Below, in pieces: positions 958 through 60,683 of a stretch of DNA of 64,000 nt. The stretch lies in sequence record NC_006883.2; one strand, written 5' to 3'. A model generated the notes under the pieces. The model was not told the origin of the DNA, made no database searches, and saw only the letters and a list, made by a program, of their open reading frames with translations. The translations under genes were made by a program, and so were the position numbers. The number at the start of each line of letters is the position of its first letter. Positions within the stretch are counted from its first letter, which is position 1.

Positions 958-1550
958 AAGTGACTCCATTTGAGACCTATCAGGCATATCTTGGAATGAA
1001 AAGTCATTTTACTAATCCTAAGTATGACTTTATTAAGTATGGTGGTAAATCTCGTGCTACAATGACATCATTCAATAAAAGGAAAGATAAGTATTGGTTT
1101 GAGAAAACTTCTAGGAAGTATTCAGATCAAGAGGTAATAGATTTTCTTTTATCAAATTTCGTAAACGCTACTAACCCACAAAATTTATGGATTGGAGAAA
1201 TTATCAATTCTGGCGAAAGAACATACGCAGAATGGAAAATGAGGCAACAGAGTTTGACGTATATGTTCACGGAACAATCAGAGAACTTACTCTCAGAGAA
1301 CGACTTAGAGAAAGTATTCAATTGCTCCAAGGGTCACCCTATAGTTCTAAAGAAGTATCTGGGTGGAGAGATCTCACTAGAAACATTATCAATACTGGAA
1401 AAAGTTTTTTCTTTCAAAGGTAAGTTTGATAAAAAACTAAAAGATCCAGTGTGGGAAACCGTAAGTATGAAATTAAAAAAGTATTTACCTTTCCTAAATA
1501 TAAATGTATTCCAATTTAAAAAAATACTAAGGGACATAGTAAATGAGTGA
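954..1550 (+). CDS. gp59: Helicase loader
   Basis: MKVTPFETYQAYLGMKSHFTNPKYDFIKYGGK N-terminus typical of cyanophage gp59; two genes upstream of gp32. Confidence 0.9.
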   Translation: MKVTPFETYQAYLGMKSHFTNPKYDFIKYGGKSRATMTSFNKRKDKYWFEKTSRKYSDQEVIDFLLSNFVNATNPQNLWIGEIINSGERTYAEWKMRQQSLTYMFTEQSENLLSENDLEKVFNCSKGHPIVLKKYLGGEISLETLSILEKVFSFKGKFDKKLKDPVWETVSMKLKKYLPFLNINVFQFKKILRDIVNE

Positions 1551-1875
1551 ATTTTTCAACTCTGATATTATTAAAGATGAATTGATGAAAATCAATCAAC
1601 TACAGGAAGAGGTATATAAACATGCTTTTACCTTTGAAACAATGTCTCGTGATGATCAATTGGATCATATTGAAGATCTAACAGAATTGTTAGATATGCA
1701 AAGGGTTATGTATACAAGGTTATCCTTGTCTGATGATCCTCAAGCAAAGAAAATGAAAGGTGAATTAGAGAAATCGGTTCAATTACTGGGATTCCCAGAA
1801 GGAACTGACATATCAGTATTATTTTCTGGTATGACTCAAACTATTGAAAAACTAAAGCAAATTGCTAAAGGTTGA
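1543..1875 (+). CDS. Conserved cyanophage/cyanobacterial helical protein (DUF1825-like)
   Basis: FFNSDIIKDEL...QRVMYTRLSLSDDPQA pattern; usual position between gp59 and gp32. Confidence 0.7.
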   Translation: MSEFFNSDIIKDELMKINQLQEEVYKHAFTFETMSRDDQLDHIEDLTELLDMQRVMYTRLSLSDDPQAKKMKGELEKSVQLLGFPEGTDISVLFSGMTQTIEKLKQIAKG

Positions 1876-1900
1876 CACTCAATAGTAACTTTGTTATAAT
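1872..1900 (+). promoter_or_regulatory. Sigma70-type promoter for gp32
   Basis: TTGACA (1872-1877), 17 bp, TATAAT (1895-1900). Confidence 0.9.
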
Positions 1901-1942
1901 AAAACCAATCAAATTAAATCCAAATTAATCCGAGGAAATCCA
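1901..1942 (+). promoter_or_regulatory. Candidate gp32 translational autorepression operator
   Basis: G-free A/T/C tract 1894-1931 with tandem CAAATTAAATC / CAAATTAATC repeats just before the GAGG SD. Confidence 0.5.
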
Positions 1943-2836
1943 ATGTCGTTTGCTAAACTCAAAAAGCAATCAAAACTAGGCTCTCTTACACAAAAACTTG
2001 TGAAGGAAGTCGAAAAGATGAATAACACAGGTGGTCAAGGTGATGACCGTCTATGGAAACTAGAAGTAGATAAAGGTGGTAACGGTTATGACGTTATTCG
2101 TTTCCTTCCTGCTCCTGATGGTGAAGATCTACCATTTGTAAAGTTATACTCCCACGCCTTCCAAGGTCCTGGTGGATGGTATATCGAGAACTCTCTAACT
2201 ACATTAGGGCAGAAAGATCCAGTATCTGAGTTCAACTCACAACTCTGGAACAATGGAACGGACGCAGGTAAAGATACTGCTCGTAAGCAAAAGCGTAAAC
2301 TTACTTATATCAGCAACATTTATGTTGTAAAAGATCCAGCAAATCCTGAGAACGAAGGTAAGACATTCTTATACAAGTATGGTAAGAAAATCTTTGACAA
2401 ACTAACTGCAGCAATGCAGCCTGAGTTTGAGGATGAGGAAGCAATTGATCCATTCGATTTCTGGCAAGGTGCTAACTTCAAGTTGAAGGCAAAGAACGTT
2501 GCTGGTTATCGTAATTATGACTCTTCTGAGTTCGCTGCCACTAGTGCATTACTAGATGATGACGATGCTATGGAAGCAATCTGGAAAAAGGAGTATTCCT
2601 TAGCAGAATTAGTTGCTACTGATCAGTTTAAGTCATATGATGAACTCAAGACTCGTCTTGGTTATGTTCTTGGCAATAAGCCAGTTCGTAATGATGCTGA
2701 AACTGTAGAGCAAGAAGTTGAAGATGTGAGAGCATCTGCTCCTGTTGTTGAGACAGTAGAATCTGTATCTAGATCTTCTGCTACAGAAGATGAAGATGAT
2801 ACACTATCATACTTTGCTAAACTAGCAGAATCGTGA
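1943..2836 (+). CDS. gp32: Single-stranded DNA-binding protein
   Basis: IRFLPAP, YSHAFQGPGGWYIENSLTTLG, KYGKKIFDK, FDFWQGANFKLK motifs and acidic C-tail (EDEDDTLSYFAKLAES). Confidence 0.97.
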   Translation: MSFAKLKKQSKLGSLTQKLVKEVEKMNNTGGQGDDRLWKLEVDKGGNGYDVIRFLPAPDGEDLPFVKLYSHAFQGPGGWYIENSLTTLGQKDPVSEFNSQLWNNGTDAGKDTARKQKRKLTYISNIYVVKDPANPENEGKTFLYKYGKKIFDKLTAAMQPEFEDEEAIDPFDFWQGANFKLKAKNVAGYRNYDSSEFAATSALLDDDDAMEAIWKKEYSLAELVATDQFKSYDELKTRLGYVLGNKPVRNDAETVEQEVEDVRASAPVVETVESVSRSSATEDEDDTLSYFAKLAES

Positions 2837-2862
2837 TATAATCATATTTTCTAGTTCTTATA

Positions 2863-2885
2863 AGACCCCTTCGGGGGTCTTTTTT
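2863..2885 (+). terminator. Rho-independent terminator between convergent gp32 and gp53
   Basis: AGACCCC-TTCG-GGGGTCT followed by TTTTT. Confidence 0.9.
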
Positions 2886-3609
2886 ATTGCACTAAATTAT
2901 TATTTTCTGTTGATATAAGAGTTTCTGAAATATATTGAGTATTTCTATCATACTTCATGATTCTATTGAAATCATTTATAAACATTTGAACAAACTCTCT
3001 TTTTAGAGGTCTTATCTTTCTTTTTGTTTCATTCTTTAAAGTTTCATATTCATAGTTAGATATTCCAACTACAGGTGAGATTGTTTGTCCTGTATAGGAT
3101 GTTCTCATTCCTCCATTCTCAGAATACCAACTATTAGCAGATCCACCTAATCGTGCGGCAGGTCCATCAATTTTAAAAGGTCTACCGCCAGATACATCAT
3201 GTTCTACTATTTGACCTGCTGGTAATATTAATCGATCATTCTGATCTCTTATTTCTAGAGTTTCATAATGATGAATTGCATTTAATCCTGCAAGACCATA
3301 TTTGTCTTCAGCATATTCATATACCTCTTTATTTGATAGTGGCCACTCATCTCTGATATTGGTTATGCCACAAGAGATAATAACAATATAATCTAAGTTT
3401 GGATCTCCGTAGATATCTTCAGCAACAGTATCAGGTCTAGCACCATCAGCAACTAGAAATACATTAAAAACTGTTGTTTCTTTAGTTAACCAGTCTAATA
3501 TCTTATTTTTACGAAATAGATTTTTTATTAGAACATAATCGGTTGATGATTTTTTATCTAATAATGGTGATGGATACCTTACATTAGGTAAATGTTTTAA
3601 ATATGCCAT
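2884..3609 (-). CDS. gp53: Baseplate wedge subunit
   Basis: MAYLKHLPNVRY, GARPDTVAEDIYGDPNLDYIV (LysM-like), EWPLSN, IHHYET, SNYEYE..KNETKRKI motifs. Confidence 0.9.
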   Translation of the reverse strand: MAYLKHLPNVRYPSPLLDKKSSTDYVLIKNLFRKNKILDWLTKETTVFNVFLVADGARPDTVAEDIYGDPNLDYIVIISCGITNIRDEWPLSNKEVYEYAEDKYGLAGLNAIHHYETLEIRDQNDRLILPAGQIVEHDVSGGRPFKIDGPAARLGGSANSWYSENGGMRTSYTGQTISPVVGISNYEYETLKNETKRKIRPLKREFVQMFINDFNRIMKYDRNTQYISETLISTENNNLVQ

Positions 3610-4769
3610 TAGTATCCAACTCCTCCAGGTACTTTTTTGTAATCTTCTTCGTATATTGGATTTGTTTCTTTAAATGACATACCAACTTTCATATGAACTG
3701 GAGTTGAGTCATCTCCTCCAGTACCATAAGAAGCATAAGTTCCTGCACCTGTATAGTTAACTGAGAATGATGTTAATGCACAAGGTTTAAATGAATTTAA
3801 GAACGGGTGTTTTTTCCCACCACTTCTATATTCTAGTAAAAATAAATCTGGTGAATTTATAAGAGCACCACCAGCACCAGTTTCTTCACCCTTTTTAGGA
3901 GCCATTGCCATTTTTAATGATCTAATGATTGTCATTGCTCTTTTACCTTCATCAGCACTTCTGGGTGTAAATGTAAAGTCAAATTTAAATTCTCTTAGGT
4001 TAACACCATCAAATAATAATTCTTTATTTTCATTTAGTATCTTCCCCATTCCTCTTGACATTACACTATTGGGTGTAACATTACCACCAAATTGATTAAC
4101 TGCAAGACCAGCTAGAGATGATCTGATAGCACCTTGCATTTCTTCAGTACCACCAATTTCTGAAAGGTCTGAACCTTTAACTAAATTATCTAATATTTTT
4201 TGAATATTACCCATAGTATCAATTGGTTGTGACATAAGACCTGTAGCTAAATCTAAACCTGCTAAGGTGAATAGATTCATAGAATTACCAGACCAGATGC
4301 AAGAATTACCATCATTAACTTGTTTTGGTATTGGTAGTTCTACATAAAATTTTGTCTTCTTCTTCATCTCATCTGTACGGGCATCCATGCCAGTATTAGT
4401 CATTCTGAATGTCTTGCCATCAAATAGGTTTAGTCCTTTACCTTTACTATTATCAATGCTACCATCTTCTTTAGTTGCTAAACCTACAAATTTTCCATCA
4501 TCACCTTTTGCACCAATTTCATTTGTTAATTGACCTTGTTGCTTTTCATTTAACTTAAGTTGAAGTCCCTCTCCTTCAGCAGGTGGGAGGTATTTTACAC
4601 ATTGTATTAAAAAAGTATCTTCACTCTTTGGATTAGTCGCTCTAGCTAATGGATAACTAAGAAAAAATTCTTTATTTGGTTTAAATTTACCAACTTCGGG
4701 TGGTTTAGGTTCTCCAGTTTCATACTGACGAGATCCATCTACTCCTGAATATATTGCACCTGGTAGCAT
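3609..4769 (-). CDS. gp48: Baseplate tail tube cap
   Basis: VELPIPKQVND, ILNENKELLFDGVNLREFKFDFTFTPRS, SFKPCALTSFSVNYT, SFKETNPIY motifs. Confidence 0.85.
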   Translation of the reverse strand: MLPGAIYSGVDGSRQYETGEPKPPEVGKFKPNKEFFLSYPLARATNPKSEDTFLIQCVKYLPPAEGEGLQLKLNEKQQGQLTNEIGAKGDDGKFVGLATKEDGSIDNSKGKGLNLFDGKTFRMTNTGMDARTDEMKKKTKFYVELPIPKQVNDGNSCIWSGNSMNLFTLAGLDLATGLMSQPIDTMGNIQKILDNLVKGSDLSEIGGTEEMQGAIRSSLAGLAVNQFGGNVTPNSVMSRGMGKILNENKELLFDGVNLREFKFDFTFTPRSADEGKRAMTIIRSLKMAMAPKKGEETGAGGALINSPDLFLLEYRSGGKKHPFLNSFKPCALTSFSVNYTGAGTYASYGTGGDDSTPVHMKVGMSFKETNPIYEEDYKKVPGGVGY

Positions 4770-4791
4770 TTATCGACCTATTTAAGTATTA

Positions 4792-5139
4792 TCAGCTATT
4801 TATACGGAATCTTGCGAAAGGAATACCATCAAGGTCAGATAGTTCATCATTAGATATTTCATATAGACCACCAGGTACTTCATTCCAAGTATAATTTCTA
4901 TGATCGTTCCAATGAAAGTTAATTCCTTTGAATCCCCATTCATATACTCCAGTTACACCAACTAGAGGATTTTGGTCATACCTTATATTAGGGGTTTTTG
5001 GATTATATACAAAGACATAGAACTTTCCTACTTCAGGTGTTTTACCACCTTCTTGTAAGACACCCATAATTTCCATCATTAAATCATCAGCATCTTCCGT
5101 GCCGATTAAGTTATCACGTATGTCTTTAACTCTACTCAT
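4792..5139 (-). CDS. Short gp2 (DNA end protector)-like protein
   Basis: FYVFVYNPKT..RYDQNPLV...GFKGINFH resembles the gp2 core motif; directly downstream of gp4. Confidence 0.55.
   Translation of the reverse strand: MSRVKDIRDNLIGTEDADDLMMEIMGVLQEGGKTPEVGKFYVFVYNPKTPNIRYDQNPLVGVTGVYEWGFKGINFHWNDHRNYTWNEVPGGLYEISNDELSDLDGIPFARFRINS
4797..4804 (-). promoter_or_regulatory. T4-type late promoter for gp48-gp53
   Basis: TATTTATA on plus = TATAAATA on minus, about 28 nt upstream of the gp48 start. Confidence 0.7.
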
Positions 5140-42368: not shown

Positions 42369-43559
42369 ATGCCATTACGTCCACATCAATCTCTTGCTTT
42401 GGGTGCTATGGCAAACCATACCAAGGGGCAAATCATAGTACCTACTGGAGGTGGTAAAACAAAATGCATGATACAGGATGCTAAAAGAGTATTTCTTACG
42501 CAAGATATTGCAACTATCGTTGTAGTTGCTCCACGCATCCTATTGGCAGAGCAACTATGCTCTGAGTTTATGGAAGAAATAAATGTAAAGGGACGCATTA
42601 AAATAATGCACGTTCATAGTGGTGAGACTAGGCATTTTTCTACGACTAATGTCGATGATATTAGATACCATAATATGTTTTGCTATGATAATAATAAGCA
42701 TCAGTTAATTTTTACTACATATCACTCACTTCATAGAATACAAGAGAGTAATATTGTAGTGGATACTGTTTACTTTGATGAGGCACACAATAGTGTTAAT
42801 AGGAACTTCTTCCCTTCTACTAAATTTTTTGGAACTGGAGGTGCTAGTAGGAACTTTTTCTTTACTGCTACTCCTAAGCACAGTCTTACTCCTTTCAAAG
42901 CTGGAATGAATGATAGAGAGGTATATGGTGATGTAATTATTAATGTTCCAGCACCTAAGTTAGTTAAAGAGGGTTACATCCTACCACCTAAAGTTCATGT
43001 ATATAAGAGTCGTTTACTTAGAAAAGATGAGATCTATTCTGAAGTAGAGTCAGATCAAATGATTAGTGCTATTGATAATTTAGAAGTGGATAAGGTTCTT
43101 ATCTGTGCTAAATCTACTAAGCAAATCATTGGTCTTCTATCTCAATCTGAGTTCTGCTATGAGTTGAATATGCGTGGTTATTCTTGGATGACTATCACAT
43201 CAAGGACAGGTGCTATTATTAATGGACAGAAGGTAGGTAGAGATGAGTTCTTTAGAACTCTTAATGCTTGGGGTAAGGATGATGAGAAGAAATTTGTGGT
43301 ATTGCATCACAGTATATTGGCAGAAGGTATAAATGTTAAAGGATTAGAAGCAGCGTTGTTTATGCGTAATATGGATTTCATTACCATTTCTCAAACGATT
43401 GGTAGAGTAATTCGTTTGGGTAATGATAAGAAGACACATGGTAAAGTATGTGTTCCTGTGTATAATAATGTAGGAATCTCTACTGCCAGAAGAGTTGAAG
43501 CAGTTGTAGATACAGTATTCAATCAAGGTCAACCAGCAATTTCAGTAATTACAAGATGA
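42369..43559 (+). CDS. Superfamily 2 helicase (type III Res-like)
   Basis: VPTGGGKT (Walker A), FDEAHN (motif II), FTATP (III), ILAEGINV (V), QTIGRVIR (VI). Confidence 0.92.
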   Translation: MPLRPHQSLALGAMANHTKGQIIVPTGGGKTKCMIQDAKRVFLTQDIATIVVVAPRILLAEQLCSEFMEEINVKGRIKIMHVHSGETRHFSTTNVDDIRYHNMFCYDNNKHQLIFTTYHSLHRIQESNIVVDTVYFDEAHNSVNRNFFPSTKFFGTGGASRNFFFTATPKHSLTPFKAGMNDREVYGDVIINVPAPKLVKEGYILPPKVHVYKSRLLRKDEIYSEVESDQMISAIDNLEVDKVLICAKSTKQIIGLLSQSEFCYELNMRGYSWMTITSRTGAIINGQKVGRDEFFRTLNAWGKDDEKKFVVLHHSILAEGINVKGLEAALFMRNMDFITISQTIGRVIRLGNDKKTHGKVCVPVYNNVGISTARRVEAVVDTVFNQGQPAISVITR

Positions 43560-43732
43560 ACATTAAAGAAGATGAATACATGTCTAGTGATGTGTGGAAA
43601 AGAAATATTCCACCAGTTACTAATTTTAAAAGAGGAAGTGCCTACAATCAATTTGGTATGTGGGTTATGTGGATTTACTATCTTATAATTCCTACGATGA
43701 TAATAAGATTAATTTGGGATTTAAACAAATGA
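43556..43732 (+). CDS. Small membrane protein (58 aa; not in ORF track)
   Basis: MNIKEDEYMSSDVWKRNIPP...GMWVMWIYYLIIPTMIIRLIWDLNK; ATGA-coupled at both ends. Confidence 0.55.
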   Translation: MNIKEDEYMSSDVWKRNIPPVTNFKRGSAYNQFGMWVMWIYYLIIPTMIIRLIWDLNK

Positions 43733-44697
43733 GAGACACTATTCTATTTGGAGATTGTAGAGATACACTCAAAGAGTTTGATGAGAAAGCAAGGATGTGT
43801 GTTACATCCCCACCTTACTATGGTCTGAGAGACTATGGTGGTGAAGAATCACAGATAGGACAAGAGCAAAGTCCTGAAGAGTTTATTGATGAGTTGGTCA
43901 AAGTATTCAGAGAAGTAAGGAATGTGCTTACTGATGATGGAACTTGTTGGGTAAACTTGGGTGATAGTTATTACAATTACAGGAAGGATGGATGTATTCC
44001 TAAACAAACATTTGCAAAGAATAGACAAGATCTACCTGAAACAACACCCAGAAGATCTAATAAGTTAAAAGGATTGAAAGAGAAGGATCTTATTGGTATT
44101 CCTTGGATGTTTGCGTTTGCTATGAGGGCAGATGGATGGCATTTGAGACAGGATATTATATGGCACAAACCTAATCCTATGCCTGAGAGTGTGAGAGATA
44201 GATGCACTAAGGCACATGAATATATCTTCTTGTTCAGTAAGCAGAAGAATTACTTCTATGATAATGAAGCAATCAAGGAGGATGCTAAAGATTGGGGAAC
44301 CAGAGATAGGAGTAAAGGTAAGTACACAAGTAATAATGATTATGGACAGACTCCACACTCAGGTTTAACTAAGAGTTATGCTAAGAAGAACAAAAGATCA
44401 GTATGGAGTGTAACAAAGAAACCATACAAGGGAGCTCACTTTGCAACATATCCACCCGATCTGATTGAACCCTGTATCCTCGCAGGAAGCGAGAAAGGAG
44501 ATATTGTGCTTGATCCATTTATGGGTAGTGGAACTACTGCTGCGGTGGCAAAATCGCTAGGTAGAGATTATATTGGATGTGAATTGCACGAAGACTATGG
44601 TGATCTTATACGCAAAAGAGTAGGTGAGTATGAACGATCTGTGCCAGTTATGGAAGTGACACAGTCACCTTTACTTGATGCTATAAATGGGTTATAA
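43729..44697 (+). CDS. Beta-class DNA methyltransferase, probably N4-cytosine
   Basis: VTSPPY (motif IV), IIWHKPN, HFATYPPDL, VLDPFMGSGTT (motif I). Start moved to ATG 43729. Confidence 0.92.
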   Translation: MRDTILFGDCRDTLKEFDEKARMCVTSPPYYGLRDYGGEESQIGQEQSPEEFIDELVKVFREVRNVLTDDGTCWVNLGDSYYNYRKDGCIPKQTFAKNRQDLPETTPRRSNKLKGLKEKDLIGIPWMFAFAMRADGWHLRQDIIWHKPNPMPESVRDRCTKAHEYIFLFSKQKNYFYDNEAIKEDAKDWGTRDRSKGKYTSNNDYGQTPHSGLTKSYAKKNKRSVWSVTKKPYKGAHFATYPPDLIEPCILAGSEKGDIVLDPFMGSGTTAAVAKSLGRDYIGCELHEDYGDLIRKRVGEYERSVPVMEVTQSPLLDAINGL

Positions 44698-53087: not shown

Positions 53088-53323
53088 TGGCATTATCAAA
53101 TCAAGTTGAATATTCTCTACGAGAAGCACAGGAGGCATTGAGAAATTCTCTTGCCTTCTCTGCTAGAAATGAGAAACCCTATGTTAGTAAGCATATTGCT
53201 GATATGCTGGCAAATATAGAAAATCTTTTAGATGCTGTCGAGATTGTGGAAAAGATTGAGAACCGCAAGGATGGTGACAGTGGATTCTTTGGCACATACT
53301 TCGAGAAACCCGAAGAAGATTAA
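53087..53323 (+). CDS. Conserved cyanophage hypothetical protein
   Basis: MALSNQVEYSLREAQEALRNSLAFSARNEKP. Confidence 0.65.
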   Translation: MALSNQVEYSLREAQEALRNSLAFSARNEKPYVSKHIADMLANIENLLDAVEIVEKIENRKDGDSGFFGTYFEKPEED

Positions 53324-53393
53324 ATAAATATTAAGCATAACTAGATTTCCTAAGTAGTTATGTTATAATACCAACACAATCACTTTAGGGGCA

Positions 53394-53600
53394 ATGATTA
53401 ATCTCGATGAACGATACCTAGAGTATCTACACACCGATAAGAAGTTTAGTATAGATGGAACCAACGAGAAAGTTATTAACTACGGTTGGCATTGTGATGG
53501 AAACGAGATAAAGGGACACTACGTTACCACTAATAACCATAAATTATACTATAATATGAGTGGTGATTTCGTTAGAAAAGAGCAACTACAACTTGCTTGA
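53394..53600 (+). CDS. Conserved cyanophage hypothetical protein
   Basis: MINLDERYLEYL...YGWHCDG. Confidence 0.6.
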   Translation: MINLDERYLEYLHTDKKFSIDGTNEKVINYGWHCDGNEIKGHYVTTNNHKLYYNMSGDFVRKEQLQLA

Positions 53601-53635
53601 ACTAGAGATTACTCAAACGCAAATTCTGTTGGATT

Positions 53636-53902
53636 ATGACACACCCAAAACACGATTTAGAACACGAGGTCTATATTGACCCTAAAGATGGTAAAGAGCA
53701 TACTAATCATGGTATGCACGAATATACCAGAGAGGATTTAGAAAATGTTCACGCAGAGTATGATGAGTATCATAAAAGTGATGTAGTTGATCCTAATGAG
53801 GGAAAGATCAACGATTATCATACAAGGCACGAAGATTCCCATCTTGAAATCTACTGTGATAATCACCCTGATGCTGACGAGTGTAAAGTATATGACGACT
53901 AA
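53636..53902 (+). CDS. cp12: Calvin-cycle inhibitor CP12
   Basis: C-terminal LEIYCDNHPDADECKVYDD (C-x8-C GAPDH-binding loop); His/acid-rich N-terminus. Confidence 0.9.
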   Translation: MTHPKHDLEHEVYIDPKDGKEHTNHGMHEYTREDLENVHAEYDEYHKSDVVDPNEGKINDYHTRHEDSHLEIYCDNHPDADECKVYDD

Positions 53903-53914
53903 GTGGTTATAGCT

Positions 53915-53973
53915 TATGACACTTGTTAGAGTGGCACACAACCCCCTTTCAGGGGGTTTTTTATTGCTATAAT
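53915..53973 (+). promoter_or_regulatory. Palindrome-type early promoter, copy 3
   Basis: taTGACACTTgttaGAGTGGCACA, 29 nt, TATAAT (53968). Confidence 0.75.
53940..53962 (+). terminator. Terminator hairpin inside the promoter spacer
   Basis: AACCCCCT-TTC-AGGGGGTT-TTTT. Confidence 0.75.
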
Positions 53974-53998
53974 ATTAATATAGTTAAGCACTAAACCA

Positions 53999-54880
53999 AT
54001 GCCATTTGTTACTGAGGAATTGAGAAGTGCTATTACTGAAGCACGTCAATTTGAAGAGAATGAGAAGTATAATGATTCTGTTTGCATGAAGGAATGTAGT
54101 GGTGGAGTTAAGGAAAGCACCTTTAACAAATCACTAGAGAACATTGCTGAGTATGCTAGTGAGGATGATATAGCATTTTATAAGTTTGTCTATTCTCTAT
54201 TCTCAAAACCTAAGTGTTGCTTACCTAAAGGTCATAAAGGTAAGTGCAAAAGTAGTTACACTTCTTACTTTGCAAAAGCATTTGCAAATAAGATAAAAGA
54301 CTGTGATACTACGCCTGGCGATGATGATATTTTATTTAAGAATAGAGCAAGAAGAACTTATCCAGTTCAAGTTACAAAAGAAAATTATACTAAGTTAAAT
54401 GCAAAGTATAAGTGGAAAGGTAACAATGTTAAACTTAAAGCAGGTACACCAGTAGAGAATGGTGGAACTCCTTATACAATAGCAACAGCACATTTCGATT
54501 TTGCAGCAATACTAATGCTACAAAAAGATATTGAGCATAACTTACCTGAAGATGTAGAAGAGAAGTTAAAGGCAAGAGCAAAGGAGATTGTAAAGGAATT
54601 TGAGGATCAGCAAATTTATATTGTTGGCAAGGATGGTTACTTATGTGATCCAGTTTTAGGATTGACAATAGAAGCGAACTGGTATAATATAGATGATAAA
54701 CGTGATCCTAATCAAATACAATTTGGACACGTTAATCCGTTAAAATCTAACAAGTATATGACTAGGGGTGGTAATGTTTTACCAATTACAAGAAGAGGTA
54801 ATTTAATACAATCAGACACACCACTATCTAAAGTTAATGAGTTTATTAAAGATGCAGCAGCACACACTTCTCCAAGGTGA
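53999..54880 (+). CDS. Candidate HNH (beta-beta-alpha-Me) type II restriction endonuclease
   Basis: C-terminal QFGHVNP...GGNVLPITRRGNLIQSD; Zn-type CCLPKGHKGKC; stop overlaps the downstream MTase start. Confidence 0.55.
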   Translation: MPFVTEELRSAITEARQFEENEKYNDSVCMKECSGGVKESTFNKSLENIAEYASEDDIAFYKFVYSLFSKPKCCLPKGHKGKCKSSYTSYFAKAFANKIKDCDTTPGDDDILFKNRARRTYPVQVTKENYTKLNAKYKWKGNNVKLKAGTPVENGGTPYTIATAHFDFAAILMLQKDIEHNLPEDVEEKLKARAKEIVKEFEDQQIYIVGKDGYLCDPVLGLTIEANWYNIDDKRDPNQIQFGHVNPLKSNKYMTRGGNVLPITRRGNLIQSDTPLSKVNEFIKDAAAHTSPR

Positions 54881-55814
54881 TTGTTTAATTAGAATGAGGG
54901 AAGTTGAGGACAAGTCTGTTGATCTTGTTCTCATTGATCCACCATATAACATTGCTAAAGATGATTGGGATAACTTTGGTGTGACCAAAAAAGGTTATCA
55001 ACCAAAAGAATATTCTGGTGTATCTTATTATGAGTGGATGCAAGAAGTATTCATTGAAATTGATAGAGTATTAAAGGATAGTGGTTCATTCTGGTTCTTT
55101 CATAATGACTTCAGAATGATGGCAGAGTTGGATAGAAGGATAACTGACAATACTAATTTGGAATATAGAAACTTTATTGTATGGAATAAGTTATTCTCTG
55201 GATGTAAGCAAGAAGGTTTCTTAAATGGATTTGTTCAGGTTGAGGGACTTAATAACTTCCAAAAGATGGCAGAGTATATTCTATTCTACACTAAGAAGAA
55301 CTTACATTTGAAGTTGAGAGAACGTAGATTAGAGTTGGGTGTTAAATCTTCTGACATCAGTAAGGAGATACTAAGTAAAACTGGTAATGTGACTGGGTGG
55401 TATAGTAACATTGAAACTGGTAAGAACTATCCCACTAAAGAAACAATAAAACCAATTACAAAGCATCTTGGATTTACCTTAGATGATTTGGTTCCTAAGT
55501 TTTATAATCAAAGAACTCATCACTCAGTATGGCAGTATGATTTTGATTCTAAAAAGATGGGACATTTAACACCTAAACCGATAGAACTATTAAAGAATGT
55601 CATTCTACATTGTACTGATGAAGGGGATACTGTCCTTGATTGTTTTGGTGGTAGTGGAAGTACGGCAGTAGCATGTATAGAAACTAATAGAGATTACATT
55701 CTTATTGAGAGAGAAGAAAAGTATGTTAATATATCAAAGGAGAGAATCCAAAATGCTGTGCCAGTTGAGGAGGTGGCACACACCCAGTTGAATCCACTTG
55801 AACAGGTACTATAA
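54852..55814 (+). CDS. Beta-class N6-adenine DNA methyltransferase with an inserted Cro/C1 HTH
   Basis: LIDPPY (IV), FIVWNK, HLTPKPIEL, VLDCFGGSGST (I); LRERRLELG...YSNIETGKNYPT...ITKHLG HTH at about 55311-55490. Confidence 0.9.
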   Translation: MQQHTLLQGDCLIRMREVEDKSVDLVLIDPPYNIAKDDWDNFGVTKKGYQPKEYSGVSYYEWMQEVFIEIDRVLKDSGSFWFFHNDFRMMAELDRRITDNTNLEYRNFIVWNKLFSGCKQEGFLNGFVQVEGLNNFQKMAEYILFYTKKNLHLKLRERRLELGVKSSDISKEILSKTGNVTGWYSNIETGKNYPTKETIKPITKHLGFTLDDLVPKFYNQRTHHSVWQYDFDSKKMGHLTPKPIELLKNVILHCTDEGDTVLDCFGGSGSTAVACIETNRDYILIEREEKYVNISKERIQNAVPVEEVAHTQLNPLEQVL

Positions 55815-55815
55815 T
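55757..55815 (+). promoter_or_regulatory. Palindrome-type early promoter, copy 4 (inside MTase 3' end)
   Basis: TGTGCCAGTTgaggAGGTGGCACA, 29 nt, TATAAT (55810). Confidence 0.8.
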
Positions 55816-55822
55816 AGCAGTA

Positions 55823-55964
55823 TGGGAAACAAAAGAGGTTCCTAACTACCTGACAAGGTGGTGCAAGTTGTACGGTTTACCGAGAAATACACAAGCACCA
55901 ATAAGAAGCAGGACATTACCGTTGGGGTAAAAGAACACACAGTCACCTCTTTTTGTTTCTCTCA
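55823..55964 (+). ncRNA. Candidate structured RNA I (about 140 nt, 5' and 3' ends paired)
   Basis: GGAAACAAAAGAGGT pairs with ACCTCTTTTTGTTTCT; internal stems TGGTGC/GCACCA, CGG/CCG, TTACC/GGTAA; starts at the predicted TSS. Confidence 0.55.
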
Positions 55965-55991
55965 CCTTATCACTTTCTAGGCAAGGATCTA

Positions 55992-56095
55992 TGGTTGTCT
56001 CTGTTCAGCAGAGAAATTACGTCCTGTAAGTCCTTTACGAGGAGATGGATGTGCCTCTCGGTTCGCAACCGAAGAAAGAACTAACATCCCCATGG
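55992..56095 (+). ncRNA. Candidate structured RNA II / 5' leader
   Basis: Stems TCTCTG/CAGAGA, TCCTGTAA/TTAC-G-AGGA, GGATGT/ACATCC enclosing TCGGTT/AACCGA. Confidence 0.5.
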
Positions 56096-56116
56096 CTTTT
56101 TACTTTTTTATTACAA

Positions 56117-56566
56117 ATGGGAACTCGCTCACGCATAGGTCTACAACTTGAGGGACAGATCATTTCAGTATATCATCATTGGGATGGTTATCCTGAGTGG
56201 TTAGGAGTTACACTTAATAAGAAGTTTAACACAAGAGAGAAGGTTGAAGAGTTGATTGATGGAGGAGATATGTCCTCTTGTGACTCTGAGTATGGATGGG
56301 ATTACAATTATATTAATGGTGATGAAGTTAAGAGAGAAGTATCTGCACCCACATACTATTCAGAGAGAGGCGAGGACTGCCCACCAAAGATCTCTGAGTC
56401 AATCACAGAGTATCTTGACCAAACAGAGAGAACTGATGGTGAGTATGCTTACCTATTTGACAATGGTGAGTGGACTTGCTATGAGATAGGTCAGTATAAA
56501 CATGGTGGAGTGAAGGGTAAGATACTCGACATTCCAGCAGAGTTTCCAGCAAGAATGGCATTTTAG
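56117..56566 (+). CDS. Conserved phage early protein
   Basis: MGTRSRIG...SVYHHWDGYPEWLG...EYAYLF; start moved from 56045, which lies inside the RNA structure. Confidence 0.75.
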   Translation: MGTRSRIGLQLEGQIISVYHHWDGYPEWLGVTLNKKFNTREKVEELIDGGDMSSCDSEYGWDYNYINGDEVKREVSAPTYYSERGEDCPPKISESITEYLDQTERTDGEYAYLFDNGEWTCYEIGQYKHGGVKGKILDIPAEFPARMAF

Positions 56567-56626
56567 TATGCCACTTCAATAACTGGCACAAGGGTGGTTG
56601 ACCTACCACCCATAACACACTATAAT
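56567..56626 (+). promoter_or_regulatory. Palindrome-type early promoter, copy 5
   Basis: taTGCCACTTcaatAACTGGCACA, 30 nt (with hairpin GGGTGG/CCACCC and a TTGACC), TATAAT (56621). Confidence 0.8.
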
Positions 56627-56698
56627 AAGATCACTTGGCATTAAGCAATTCCTAGTCTTTTGACATAAATGGATACTCTTATGTAAGTCCAATACCCT

Positions 56699-56818
56699 AT
56701 TGAGAGATATGTGGTTCCATAGCCCCGATTAAGTTTGGGGGTTCAGGTGTAAGCGATTCCCTATGGGTAAATTTGGGCAGCATGGGTGAAACCCAGATCA
56801 TTGCCCCACTCTCTCAAT
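56699..56818 (+). ncRNA. Candidate structured RNA IIIa (multi-way junction)
   Basis: Closing stem ATTGAGAGA/TCTCTCAAT; internal TATG/CATA, GCCCCGA/TTGGGGG, GGGCA/TGCCC, TGGGT/ACCCA. Confidence 0.6.
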
Positions 56819-56825
56819 TTTTTCT

Positions 56826-56903
56826 TGTGGTATGACTTAGTACCTGTAATTAGACTCAGTAAATGGGTTAGGATCAGGTGAAGCACCTCTTGAGCATACC
56901 ACA
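56826..56903 (+). ncRNA. Candidate structured RNA IIIb (sister of IIIa)
   Basis: Closing stem TGTGGTATG/CATACCACA; AGGTG/CACCT hairpin; shares TGTAA, GAYTC, GTAAAT, GGG and GGTGAA with IIIa in the same order. Confidence 0.55.
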
Positions 56904-56932
56904 CCCCTTTGTAAACGACACTACTTTTTATT

Positions 56933-57061
56933 ATGTCACTTGATTCATCTAACGCAGTTTCTTACAACTTTGCGGAGTTCCTACTTGAGAACGCAGATAC
57001 AGCAGCAGATGTATTAGCAGTTCTTGATGATGTTGTGGAGGTGCAAGAGACCGCTTTATAA
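56933..57061 (+). CDS. Small acidic protein (42 aa; not in ORF track)
   Basis: MSLDSSNAVSYNFAEFLLENADTAADVLAVLDDVVEVQETAL; only ORF in this transcription unit. Confidence 0.55.
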   Translation: MSLDSSNAVSYNFAEFLLENADTAADVLAVLDDVVEVQETAL

Positions 57062-57105
57062 ACTGGCACACAAATGCCCCCATCTCCTGTTGGGGGCATT
57101 ATAAT
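57047..57105 (+). promoter_or_regulatory. Palindrome-type early promoter, copy 6
   Basis: gagaCCgcTTtatAAACTGGCACA, 29 nt (with hairpin AATGCCCCC/GGGGGCATT), TATAAT (57100). Confidence 0.7.
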
Positions 57106-57133
57106 AATTACATACACAACAAGGGAGATTCAA

Positions 57134-57622
57134 ATGCCTACGGTTCTTACAAGACAAGAGAGAGACAGAATCATTGGTAGTCTCCAAGATAATGTCCTTA
57201 GATGGACAGAGCAATTATGTGATTCGCTTGCTGAAAACTACAGGCAGTATCACAGAAGAATGATTGAATCTAATGCTGCAAGGTTTAATGCTGATGGAGA
57301 GAGACAAGATCTATCACGCTACGCACAACAGCAATTAGATGCCTTAAATGATGGTACATTCAAAGGAATGAGATTTACCATAGAAAGTGGTAGAAAGTAC
57401 CATAAGATCATTTCAAACGATTGGGATGACCGTAGAGAAGAGTGGAGAAGTGGTGGAGTTCACGCATTTGTCAACAAGCATACAGGTGAAGTTTACAAAG
57501 CAGCATCATGGAAATCTCCAGCAAAGCATGTTAGATACGATCTAAGACTTATTAAGGATCGTGAGTATGTGCTTGATCCACGCAACTGCGGATGGGCAGG
57601 TGGTTATCTTTACATGAGGTAA
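57134..57622 (+). CDS. Conserved phage early protein
   Basis: GRKYHKI...VHAFVNKHTGEVYKAASWKSPAKHVRYDL; start moved to the ATG after the AAGGGAG SD. Confidence 0.75.
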   Translation: MPTVLTRQERDRIIGSLQDNVLRWTEQLCDSLAENYRQYHRRMIESNAARFNADGERQDLSRYAQQQLDALNDGTFKGMRFTIESGRKYHKIISNDWDDRREEWRSGGVHAFVNKHTGEVYKAASWKSPAKHVRYDLRLIKDREYVLDPRNCGWAGGYLYMR

Positions 57623-58045: not shown

Positions 58046-58188
58046 GTAATCAAATGACCAGTAAGGAAAAACTTCTATTCATTCTATCATTCTTATGGAC
58101 ACTACATTGGGGAACAAGAGTCGTATCTATCGTAGTGGATACGGTTATTCTAAACGCAGGTGTGAGAGCGTTACCAACTGGTTTCTAA
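58042..58188 (+). CDS. Small membrane protein overlapping the next gene (48 aa; not in ORF track)
   Basis: MSNQMTSKEKLLFILSFLWTLHWGTRVVSIVVDTVILNAGVRALPTGF; ATGA-coupled to the upstream gene. Confidence 0.45.
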   Translation: MSNQMTSKEKLLFILSFLWTLHWGTRVVSIVVDTVILNAGVRALPTGF

Positions 58189-58592
58189 ACAATTTCCTAC
58201 CCAGACATCATATTGATGTAACTATCACTCATAGAGGGTTAATTAGAGAGGATGCAATGGGTTTCTGTGACTGGATAGGAACGTCACATAACCCAAGAGA
58301 TTTTGAGATACAGATGCAGTCCAATATGGATGCTAAAATGTATATTGAAACTCTATTGCACGAACTTGTGCATCTTCGTCAATGGGTTCATGGAACTCTG
58401 AAGATGAAGAGTGGTAAGTTTGTATGGAAGGGTGAGGACATACATCATATTGATTATATGAATCAACCCCATGAAGTTGAAGCATTTAGAGAAGAAGGTA
58501 TTCTATACCGTAGATATATGAAAGAAGTGAAGGGTGTGACAGTTAAAGAACCTGCACACTACTTCCCCAATAGATTAATTCAGTCTCTATAA
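58095..58592 (+). CDS. Zinc metallopeptidase (SprT-like, HExxH)
   Basis: ETLLHELVHLRQW and PHEVEA third-ligand motif. Confidence 0.75.
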   Translation: MDTTLGNKSRIYRSGYGYSKRRCESVTNWFLNNFLPRHHIDVTITHRGLIREDAMGFCDWIGTSHNPRDFEIQMQSNMDAKMYIETLLHELVHLRQWVHGTLKMKSGKFVWKGEDIHHIDYMNQPHEVEAFREEGILYRRYMKEVKGVTVKEPAHYFPNRLIQSL

Positions 58593-59978: not shown

Positions 59979-60127
59979 TACATGATAACGATCTAAAAGA
60001 ACTGCATAATCGTTTCTTTAAAATGATGGGATGTAAACCCAGACGTAAGAAGAAGTCTCATCAATGGTGGGAATCACCTTGGTTGGACTATGATGATCCA
60101 AGAAACTGTTATTATGAAGTTAGATAG
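59975..60127 (+). CDS. Hypothetical protein (50 aa; not in ORF track)
   Basis: MIHDNDLKELHNRFFKMMGCKP...; ATGA-coupled. Confidence 0.4.
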   Translation: MIHDNDLKELHNRFFKMMGCKPRRKKKSHQWWESPWLDYDDPRNCYYEVR

Positions 60128-60683
60128 TAGTAAGTTAATGTATTCAGGTGGTAGCAATGATGAGTGCTATACTCCTGACTATGGTGTTAAACCTATCCTT
60201 AAGTATATTCCGAAGGATGCAGTTGTATGGTGTCCTTTTGATACGCAAGAGAGTGAGTTTGTAAAGCAGATTAGAGAACAGAATGAGGTCATACACTCTC
60301 ATATTGGTACAGGAAAGAACTTCTTTGTATTTGAACCGCATGGATGGGATGTGATGGTATCAAATCCACCATTTACTAATAAACGTAAATACTTTGAGAG
60401 AGCATTATCATTCAATAAACCTTTTGCATTAATAATGACTAACACTTGGTTGAATGACTCAGCACCTAAGCAGTTGTTTAAGGATAGGGACTTACAGTTG
60501 CTTATGTTTGATAAGAGAATGAAGTTTATTAGTCCTGATGGTAGGGATAATGATAAGATCACGTTCAGTAGCAGTTATTATTGTTGGAATATGCTACCAA
60601 AGCAGATCGTAATGGAAACCCTTGATGTGCCAGCTAAGAAAGTGGCACAGAAGAGCAGCAGCGAGGCAGTTCTACCACTATAA
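60114..60683 (+). CDS. Minimal N6-adenine methyltransferase
   Basis: DECYTP, VVWCPFD (motif I-like), KNFF, VSNPPF (IV); no separate TRD. Confidence 0.75.
   Translation: MKLDSSKLMYSGGSNDECYTPDYGVKPILKYIPKDAVVWCPFDTQESEFVKQIREQNEVIHSHIGTGKNFFVFEPHGWDVMVSNPPFTNKRKYFERALSFNKPFALIMTNTWLNDSAPKQLFKDRDLQLLMFDKRMKFISPDGRDNDKITFSSSYYCWNMLPKQIVMETLDVPAKKVAQKSSSEAVLPL

Follow-up and report, generated by a model that had tools for sequence, protein, structure and literature searches.

A likely DraIII-family restriction-modification operon in the lytic cyanophage P-SSM2, and avoidance of a gapped four-base word in the viral genomes that carry it

Can a lytic phage encode a restriction enzyme together with the methyltransferase that protects its own DNA? 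The question is raised by two overlapping genes in a 64,000-nt stretch of DNA (hereafter, the window) that is 100% identical, at the same coordinates, to bases 1-64000 of Prochlorococcus phage P-SSM2 (NC_006883.2 / AY939844.2), a T4-like cyanomyovirus with a lytic life cycle (Kyanoviridae, Salacisavirus). Its two open reading frames (ORFs) correspond to PSSM2_067, a 'hypothetical protein' (53999-54880), and PSSM2_068, a 'DNA methyltransferase' (annotated 54894-55814). An earlier note, made from the letters of the window alone, had proposed that they form a complete restriction-modification (R-M) pair, with an HNH-type nuclease gene first, followed by a DPPY methyltransferase with an internal helix-turn-helix (HTH). 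All of the sequence features that it listed were found, and the proposal itself is supported by what this analysis establishes: homology and a matching fold, conservation of the catalytic residues, strict linkage of the two genes, purifying selection on them, and an avoidance of the word CANNNNNTG that is specific to carriers. We consider it likely that the two genes constitute a functional type II (IIP-like) R-M operon of a lytic T4-like cyanophage, with CANNNNNTG, or sites with that core, as its probable target. Surveys indicate that complete R-M systems are practically absent from virulent phages, and that solitary methyltransferases are common (PMC4176335). A literature search, with REBASE outside its reach, found no publication describing this nuclease-methyltransferase pair.

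The 293-amino-acid nuclease ORF, present on the plus strand at 53999-54880 as had been claimed, is PSSM2_067, and had zero matches in Pfam, NCBIfam, PHROGs, PADLOC and a single-sequence search of the PDB. Comparison of folds, and of profiles as the earlier note had suggested, did find a nuclease fold. An AlphaFold2 model with a mean pLDDT (predicted local distance difference test) of 94.9 retrieved the restriction enzyme DraIII (PDB 4l0k) as top Foldseek match (E 8.8e-5) and as the sole significant match among solved structures. VIA aligned 190 of 207 residues (Z 12.1, root-mean-square deviation 4.0), the next entry being a Cas9 HNH domain at Z 2.4. The direct profile match of the 293-residue family to DraIII had an E value of 0.018. 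Sequence homology was confirmed because intermediates, a short subfamily of proteins of ~240 residues, link the two: hhalign matched the 293-residue family to this subfamily with a probability of 99.8% (E 1.4e-29), and the subfamily in turn matched DraIII over its full length (residues 1-225 of 227; E 5.7e-22).

DraIII uses H183 as general base and N202 as magnesium ligand, and has two zinc sites, C4/C22/H28/C32 in the N-terminal domain and C157/C160/H198/C201 in the C-terminal domain, of which every ligand is essential (PMC3996161). The catalytic beta-beta-alpha-metal motif of the phage protein (54716-54811, plus strand) aligns with this active site, H244, the putative general base, with H183, and N268, the putative magnesium ligand, with N202. 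The HNH-like C-terminal motif of the earlier note holds as a His-Me (HNH-type) motif, FGH244...GGN259...RRGN268, while the asparagine spacing written there does not, N259 and N268 being the relevant residues. The cysteine-histidine cluster that it had pointed out is present as CC-x4-H-x3-C (C72, C73, H79, C83), and C73, H79 and C83, together with C29, form a putative zinc site (54083-54247, plus strand) that aligns with the first one of DraIII; the spacing of C73, H79 and C83 (C-x5-H-x3-C) is identical to that of C22, H28 and C32. Relatives of the nuclease numbered 69 at 90% clustering and 162 at 50% clustering, nearly all from marine metagenomes, and an alignment of 21 of them, down to 24% identity, contained 22 invariant columns, including C29, C73, H79, C83, H244, N259 and N268.

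The second zinc site has been lost, with C157/C160/H198/C201 of DraIII replaced by C216, V219, T264 and G267; in the short subfamily it is kept, its CxxC...HxxC pattern appearing as CxxC...HRxCN. Because of this loss, the aligned residues point to a divergent branch of the DraIII family, and not to a DraIII isoschizomer. A homodimer was predicted through residues 202-293, with an ipSAE interface score of 0.77 against 0.01 for the best control, a level attained by 20 of 30 known homodimers and by 1 of 23 monomers; prior exposure of the model to DraIII may in part account for the value. The C-terminal domain, the same region, forms the dimer interface of DraIII (PMC3996161). A free-standing HNH homing endonuclease was rejected as an identity for the protein, which is always paired with a methyltransferase, is unmatched by Pfam HNH and has the fold of a type IIP enzyme.

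The intact DPPY methyltransferase that had been claimed to overlap the nuclease gene is likewise present, as an ORF of 325 amino acids on the plus strand (54837-55814), the first 44 nt of which lie within the nuclease gene. This overlap would be 29 nt if the ATG at 54852 were used, and there is none with the RefSeq start at 54894; homologous pairs elsewhere overlap or abut, with spacings of -56 to +10 nt. We prefer the longer ORF because the RefSeq start would drop a conserved N-terminal QGDCL segment, in which D15 is invariant in 14 relatives; the annotated start is thus probably too short, and 54837 or 54852 is likelier. Pfam N6_N4_Mtase matched the protein at 149 bits (cut-off 26.7; E 2.5e-43), and DPPY (residues 34-37) precedes FGGSGS (residues 270-275), which is the motif order of the beta class (motif IV before motif I). 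The nearest solved relatives were M.MboIIA and CcrM in a PDB sequence search, and CcrM, M.BceJIV and M.RsrI in Foldseek. These relatives and the DPPY motif favor N6-methyladenine (m6A) as the product, with N4-cytosine enzymes also among the matches. The nearest characterized relative found was M.Esp1396I, with 27.6% identity over 91% of the length.

The variable region of the methyltransferase had been read as containing a Cro/C1-type HTH of ~60 residues, which might regulate the module or belong to the target-recognition domain (TRD). The HTH is real. It occupies residues ~155-222 (55299-55502, plus strand), an insert between motif VIII and motif X, which is the TRD position. Searched alone against the PDB, the insert matched DdrO-type XRE-family regulators over 73 residues (E 0.0017-0.011); Pfam HTH_3 scored 17.7 bits in PSSM2_068, below its cut-off of 23, and gave matches to 7 of the 14 relatives (best 1e-5). 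AlphaFold2 modelled the insert as five helices at residues 158-218 (pLDDT 85-94), with residues 186-197 as the putative recognition helix, and among the Foldseek matches no solved methyltransferase covered it.

As to its role, M.SsoII and M.Ecl18kI are C5 methyltransferases that regulate their own synthesis through an N-terminal HTH that binds an operator. Like PSSM2_068, they unite an HTH with a DNA methyltransferase in a single chain, but the HTH of PSSM2_068 is internal and takes the TRD position of a beta-class N6-adenine enzyme. An M.SsoII-like autoregulation of the operon would fit the genuine XRE-type DNA-binding fold, the lack of a separate controller (C) gene in the phage loci and a 10-nt AT palindrome that overlaps the -10 region. 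We nevertheless judge it quite improbable as an alternative to target recognition, because the enzyme lacks any other domain able to read DNA, and because the HTH is near-identical in loci whose upstream regions have no obvious common operator. With an internal HTH, no C gene in the phage loci and no evident common operator upstream of the nuclease in the six loci compared, neither M.SsoII-type nor C-protein control is indicated. The reading of the HTH as TRD, which is favored over that of an autoregulator, is supported further by its near-invariance even where the partner nucleases of the methyltransferases share less than 30% identity, and by M.Esp1396I, which has the same insert although a separate C protein controls that system (PMC2691842). 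The two roles are compatible with each other.

Linkage of the two genes was strict. In IMG/VR, 46 contigs encode a relative of the nuclease, and all 44 with room for it carry the HTH-methyltransferase gene immediately downstream, four of them convergently; the remaining two end at the nuclease gene. The genes were also paired in 12 further loci, and over all the loci the orientation was sometimes flipped and adjacency kept. Pairing held in ENA, JGI and NCBI loci of differing gene neighborhoods (including a Gracilibacteria assembly) and in the short DraIII-like subfamily. When three contigs were picked via the methyltransferase, a nuclease relative lay upstream in all three. Both genes are under purifying selection: the ratio of nonsynonymous to synonymous substitution (dN/dS) is 0.13-0.41 for the nuclease, the faster-evolving of the two, and 0.06-0.27 for its methyltransferase partner. 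In a set of 50,697 deposited phage records, either gene was present only in P-SSM2, in its near-twin P-SSM5 and in one single-cell marine virus fragment. The nuclease family would seem to be essentially viral or metagenomic, since a pattern-based scan of 185,579 species-representative genomes gave a single match, in a metagenome-assembled genome (MAG) of the Bacteroidetes. Distant relatives of the pair (nuclease 28-32% and methyltransferase 48-50% identical, genes convergent) also occurred in three GVMAG-labelled IMG/VR contigs, which are binned as giant-virus MAGs.

If the enzymes are active, their site might have left a trace in the genomes that carry them. The DraIII site, CACNNNGTG, showed only a modest depletion in P-SSM2 (13 observed vs 29 expected; rank 83 of 448 palindromes), and for this reason we performed a wider scan of gapped words, in which each of 256 dinucleotide pairs at gaps of 1-12 (3072 words) was compared with the same pair at gaps of the same codon phase. 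CA-N5-TG was the most depleted of the 3072 words in four independent sets: P-SSM2 (671 observed vs 1488 reference; z -21), 33 contigs with close relatives of the nuclease (220 vs 953; z -24), 12 contigs with distant relatives (114 vs 328; z -12) and 44 kb from carriers of the short subfamily (86 vs 162; z -6). With both genes removed, the flanks alone contained 251 sites vs 818, and 41 of 41 loci fell below the reference; several carrier loci had no site at all where 20-36 were expected. Of the pair itself, the nuclease gene is free of the word and the methyltransferase gene has a single copy.

Phages that lack the pair showed no such deficit, the ratio of observed to reference counts being 0.97 in P-SSM4, which infects the same host strain as P-SSM2, 1.00 in P-RSM1 and 1.03 in the congener AG-345-F15. 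When orthologous DNA was aligned over 23 kb, 121 sites fell in AG-345-F15 and 36 in P-SSM2, whereas two control words were equally frequent in the same alignment (101 vs 94 and 125 vs 127). A single word, CANNNNNTG, is avoided across all carrier sets and not in the controls, and may be read by one of the enzymes or by both. The core CA-N5-TG is contained in the DraIII site (PMC3996161) and in the Esp1396I site, CCANNNNNTGG (PMC10644984). Read most simply, these counts reflect an active system that recognizes CANNNNNTG or sites with that core, and an imperfect self-protection that has selected against the site in carrier genomes.

It is conceivable that the true site is narrower, such as CACNNNGTG itself, and that the broader depletion has another cause, since the nuclease is a DraIII homologue and the DraIII site is somewhat depleted in P-SSM2. 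We regard this as improbable, given that the deficit of CA-N5-TG is independent of neighboring bases, with all 16 inner and all 16 outer base combinations depleted alike (0.22-0.56), and that so many other palindromes rank ahead of CACNNNGTG. It is also conceivable that only the methyltransferase matters, as a protection from host restriction, and that the 293-residue protein is an inactive relic or has some other role. The commonness of solitary methyltransferases in phages, with complete systems very rare (PMC4176335), and the missing second zinc site lend themselves to this possibility, which we nevertheless consider very improbable: the residues of the catalytic and first zinc sites are invariant in relatives down to 24% identity, the dN/dS of the nuclease (0.13-0.41) is that of a gene under constraint, neither gene occurred without the other in the contigs sampled, and P-SSM4 shows no avoidance of CANNNNNTG in the same host strain, which indicates that the pressure does not come from the shared host.

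Several observations weigh against an active R-M system with CANNNNNTG as its site. P-SSM2 still keeps 671 of these sites, and each ligand of the zinc site that the phage nuclease has lost is essential in DraIII. A cost of methylation, for example through methyl-dependent host nucleases, could in principle have caused the depletion instead of self-restriction, and is the main alternative; an orphan HTH-methyltransferase, sought as a means of separating the cost of methylation from that of restriction, was not present in the three contigs examined. To our knowledge, no restriction enzyme has a plain CANNNNNTG site. The methyltransferase of DraIII itself, wanted for comparison, was not reached via a pattern-based genome scan, a profile word search (which held no named DraIII orthologue) or the literature. 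RNA-sequencing runs of infected host contained the region only in contigs of 8-72 kb with flat depth, in which neither transcript ends nor timing are visible. Finally, in a nuclease subfamily of ~306-311 residues with the motif ...TRPGNVLPITRETN, two carrier contigs showed a weak depletion of CANNNNNTG (0.82 and 0.75); this subfamily may have a different or narrower site, or may have been acquired recently.

Other words are also rare in these genomes. P-SSM2 shows an extreme avoidance of many 6-bp palindromes, with TTCGAA found 0 times vs 108 expected, and with ACCGGT, GGTACC, TGCGCA, TCCGGA, AGGCCT, CCTAGG, CACGTG and GTGCAC all absent. AGNCT and GGNCC are depleted in all three of P-SSM2, P-SSM4 and P-RSM1.

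How would the pair be expressed? The earlier note had placed an early-type promoter before the nuclease gene, at 53915, where we found nothing convincing. A perfect match to an extended -10 promoter, TGCTATAAT, lies instead at 53965-53973 (plus strand), 25 nt before the nuclease ATG, and may serve this function; that it acts early is something we infer. A sigma-70 scan upstream of the nuclease, which requires a -35 element, returned no promoter. Directly before the candidate promoter is a terminator-like hairpin with a T-run (53940-53964, plus strand; hairpin 53940-53958), detected by a terminator scan, which would insulate the pair from the upstream genes. The arrangement recurs: TGNTATAAT occurs 41 times on the plus strand of the P-SSM2 genome vs 18 expected, and 10 times on the minus strand, mostly 20-40 nt before ORF starts, and the whole module of hairpin, T-run and extended -10 element is present in six copies directly before ORFs (P-SSM2 42339, 53965, 68554, 120692, 142820 and 245604), the copy at 68512-68563 being 83% identical over 52 nt to the one that precedes the nuclease gene. 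The recurring module supports the presence of a host-polymerase promoter. Within the nuclease gene, ~150 nt before the methyltransferase start, TTGACA and TGGTATAAT (54662-54688, plus strand) form a candidate internal promoter, which may be a by-product of the coding sequence.

The surroundings of the pair suggest a locus of exchange. A 14-nt direct repeat, GTGGCACACAnCCC, brackets the cassette on the plus strand, with its left copy at 53931-53944 and its second at 55773-55786; these are its only two matches in the window (two matches occurred in 0 of 100 shuffles). The cassette is also flanked by two related promoter-bearing modules, of which the right junction module (55757-55849, plus strand) comprises the last 19 codons of the methyltransferase, the second 14-nt repeat and a promoter-like site, TTGAAT-16-TATAAT. 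This junction is 81% identical in the congener AG-345-F15, which carries a different cassette: positions 1534-4811 of AG-345-F15 (MH319750.1) are the counterpart of 53555-55849 of the window, with the same flanks and a different cargo of 3.2 kb, consisting of ORFs of 210 and 465 amino acids without family match, followed by another N6_N4 methyltransferase (23% identity, no HTH). The latter overlaps the 465-residue ORF by ATGA, and it ends in the same 16-residue tail as PSSM2_068 because the junction DNA is shared. The AG-345-F15 cassette is possibly a second, unrelated R-M system at an exchange hotspot.

These features raise the possibility that the pair is chiefly a selfish mobile cassette, in which relatives without the cassette are cut by the nuclease during co-infection and acquire it through recombinational repair, as with T4-type homing endonucleases, any benefit to the phage being secondary. 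The neighborhoods of the cassette do differ among phages: in many metagenomic phages the pair sits after a helicase homologous to PSSM2_039 of P-SSM2 (42369-43559), elsewhere it follows ribonucleotide reductase, and P-SSM2 has a locus of its own. The bracketing of the P-SSM2 cassette by the direct repeat and the promoter and terminator modules, and the congener's own, different methyltransferase cassette, which is enclosed by the same flanks and joined within the shared last 19 codons, are also as expected of such an element. Carrier genomes, however, have been remodelled throughout, with the loss of hundreds of sites, which argues for long residence and not for rapid hopping. We therefore hold the selfish account to be somewhat unlikely; it concerns why the pair persists, and is compatible with the enzymology proposed here.

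The neighboring DNA offers several further observations. In P-SSM2 the helicase PSSM2_039 is followed by PSSM2_041 ('dam'; the two span 42369-44697 of the window), an orphan beta-class methyltransferase that is 25% identical to PSSM2_068 and has neither an HTH nor a nuclease partner. A 25-nt inverted repeat (55757-55781 and 56566-56590, 80% complementary) brackets the stretch with PSSM2_070. The G+C content of 55600-57100 is 0.41-0.43 compared with ~0.34, and 55815-56116 is without an annotated gene, locus tag 069 being missing. A third annotated DNA methyltransferase, PSSM2_078 (60090-60683, 197 amino acids), has weak Pfam matches to EcoRI_methylase and Eco57I (E ~0.002), and PSSM2_074 (58095-58592) is annotated with PF06114, yet had no Pfam match at E 0.01. 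Rfam matched nothing real over 53300-57200.

The mechanism that we infer, which takes in the exact site, the m6A mark, expression by host RNA polymerase and the biological role, would be as follows. Host RNA polymerase would read the operon from the extended -10 promoter. The nuclease would be a homodimeric DraIII-family His-Me (HNH) enzyme that cuts unmethylated CANNNNNTG, with His244 activating water, Asn268 holding the magnesium ion and the zinc site C29/C73/H79/C83 bracing the N-terminal domain. The methyltransferase, a presumptive beta-class m6A enzyme with the XRE-type HTH as its TRD, would mark adenine on both strands, and the most likely target of both enzymes is the gapped palindrome CANNNNNTG or a group of sites that share its core. 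If packaged virion DNA bears the methyl mark from the start, and replicating DNA is hemimethylated, the nuclease would not have to be delayed as it usually must, which would explain the nuclease-first order, the overlapping genes and the lack of a C gene. In the control phages, which represent unselected cyanophage DNA, CANNNNNTG occurs about once per 140-165 bp, and any unmethylated DNA in the cell, be it the chromosome of the host or the genome of a co-infecting phage that lacks the cassette, would be cut at intervals of ~150 bp.

A weapon against host or rival DNA is therefore a plausible role for the pair. We are somewhat more doubtful than confident about the fullest version of this picture, in which a family of lytic marine phages, comprising T4-like cyanophages and contigs binned as giant viruses, carries a DraIII-derived R-M system with an undescribed and very frequent four-base gapped site, CANNNNNTG (m6A), that shreds the unmethylated DNA of hosts and rival phages. 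The system would occupy an exchange locus bounded by terminator and promoter modules, at which related phages hold alternative methyltransferase-linked cassettes and which would serve as an arms locus for competition between viruses, and the self-inflicted pressure would have erased up to 100% of the sites in carrier genomes. Unlike T4, which distinguishes its own DNA from that of the host by modified bases, T4-like cyanophages break down host DNA and have no such bases. If the picture is true, a methylation self-mark combined with a frequent cutter would give this cyanophage lineage a simple means of discriminating self from host, and would provide a mechanism for exclusion between cyanophages that co-infect cells in the ocean. 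A 'hypothetical protein' becomes a candidate restriction enzyme for which a new specificity is predicted, and the cognate site of a phage-borne system may be readable from carrier-specific word avoidance.

Lytic viruses with restriction enzymes have a precedent in the chloroviruses, which have a frequent-cutting type II system, methylate their own DNA and degrade host DNA early; they differ from P-SSM2 in their eukaryotic algal host and in their unrelated enzymes, and the degradation of host DNA by the P-SSM2 pair is conjectural. The layout of the locus resembles that of the PeSL (promoter-early stem-loop) cassettes of T4-type phages, in which a repeated stem-loop and a host-type promoter flank cargo that varies among relatives. 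The sequences of the P-SSM2 modules are unrelated to these, and recombination at them is suggested by the comparison with one congener. Esp1396I, encoded by plasmid pEsp1396, has a beta-class DPPY methyltransferase whose XRE-type HTH has the same insertion point as that of PSSM2_068, and CA-N5-TG in its site. It differs in having a BstXI-family nuclease partner, convergent genes and a separate C protein (PMC2691842), whereas the phage genes are co-directional and overlapping, lack a C gene and include a DraIII-family nuclease.

DraIII, a type IIP enzyme of Deinococcus radiophilus that leaves 3-nt 3' overhangs, shares with the phage nuclease a two-domain fold over the whole chain, the beta-beta-alpha-metal active site and the N-terminal C...C-x5-H-x3-C zinc site; dimerization through the C-terminal domain, as in DraIII, is predicted for the phage nuclease, and the DraIII site contains the CA-N5-TG core. 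The phage-borne enzyme, only ~14-16% identical to DraIII, exceeds it by ~65 residues, is extended at its N terminus and has a larger loop separating its first and second zinc ligands; it is without the second zinc site, and the pattern of avoidance points to the less specific site CANNNNNTG. The building blocks of the system are known, namely a nuclease of the DraIII family and a beta-class methyltransferase that bears an HTH like that of Esp1396I. What is new is that these two lineages occur as a pair and that the pair resides in lytic cyanophages, that the nuclease has lost its second zinc site, and that a gapped specificity of four bases is predicted.

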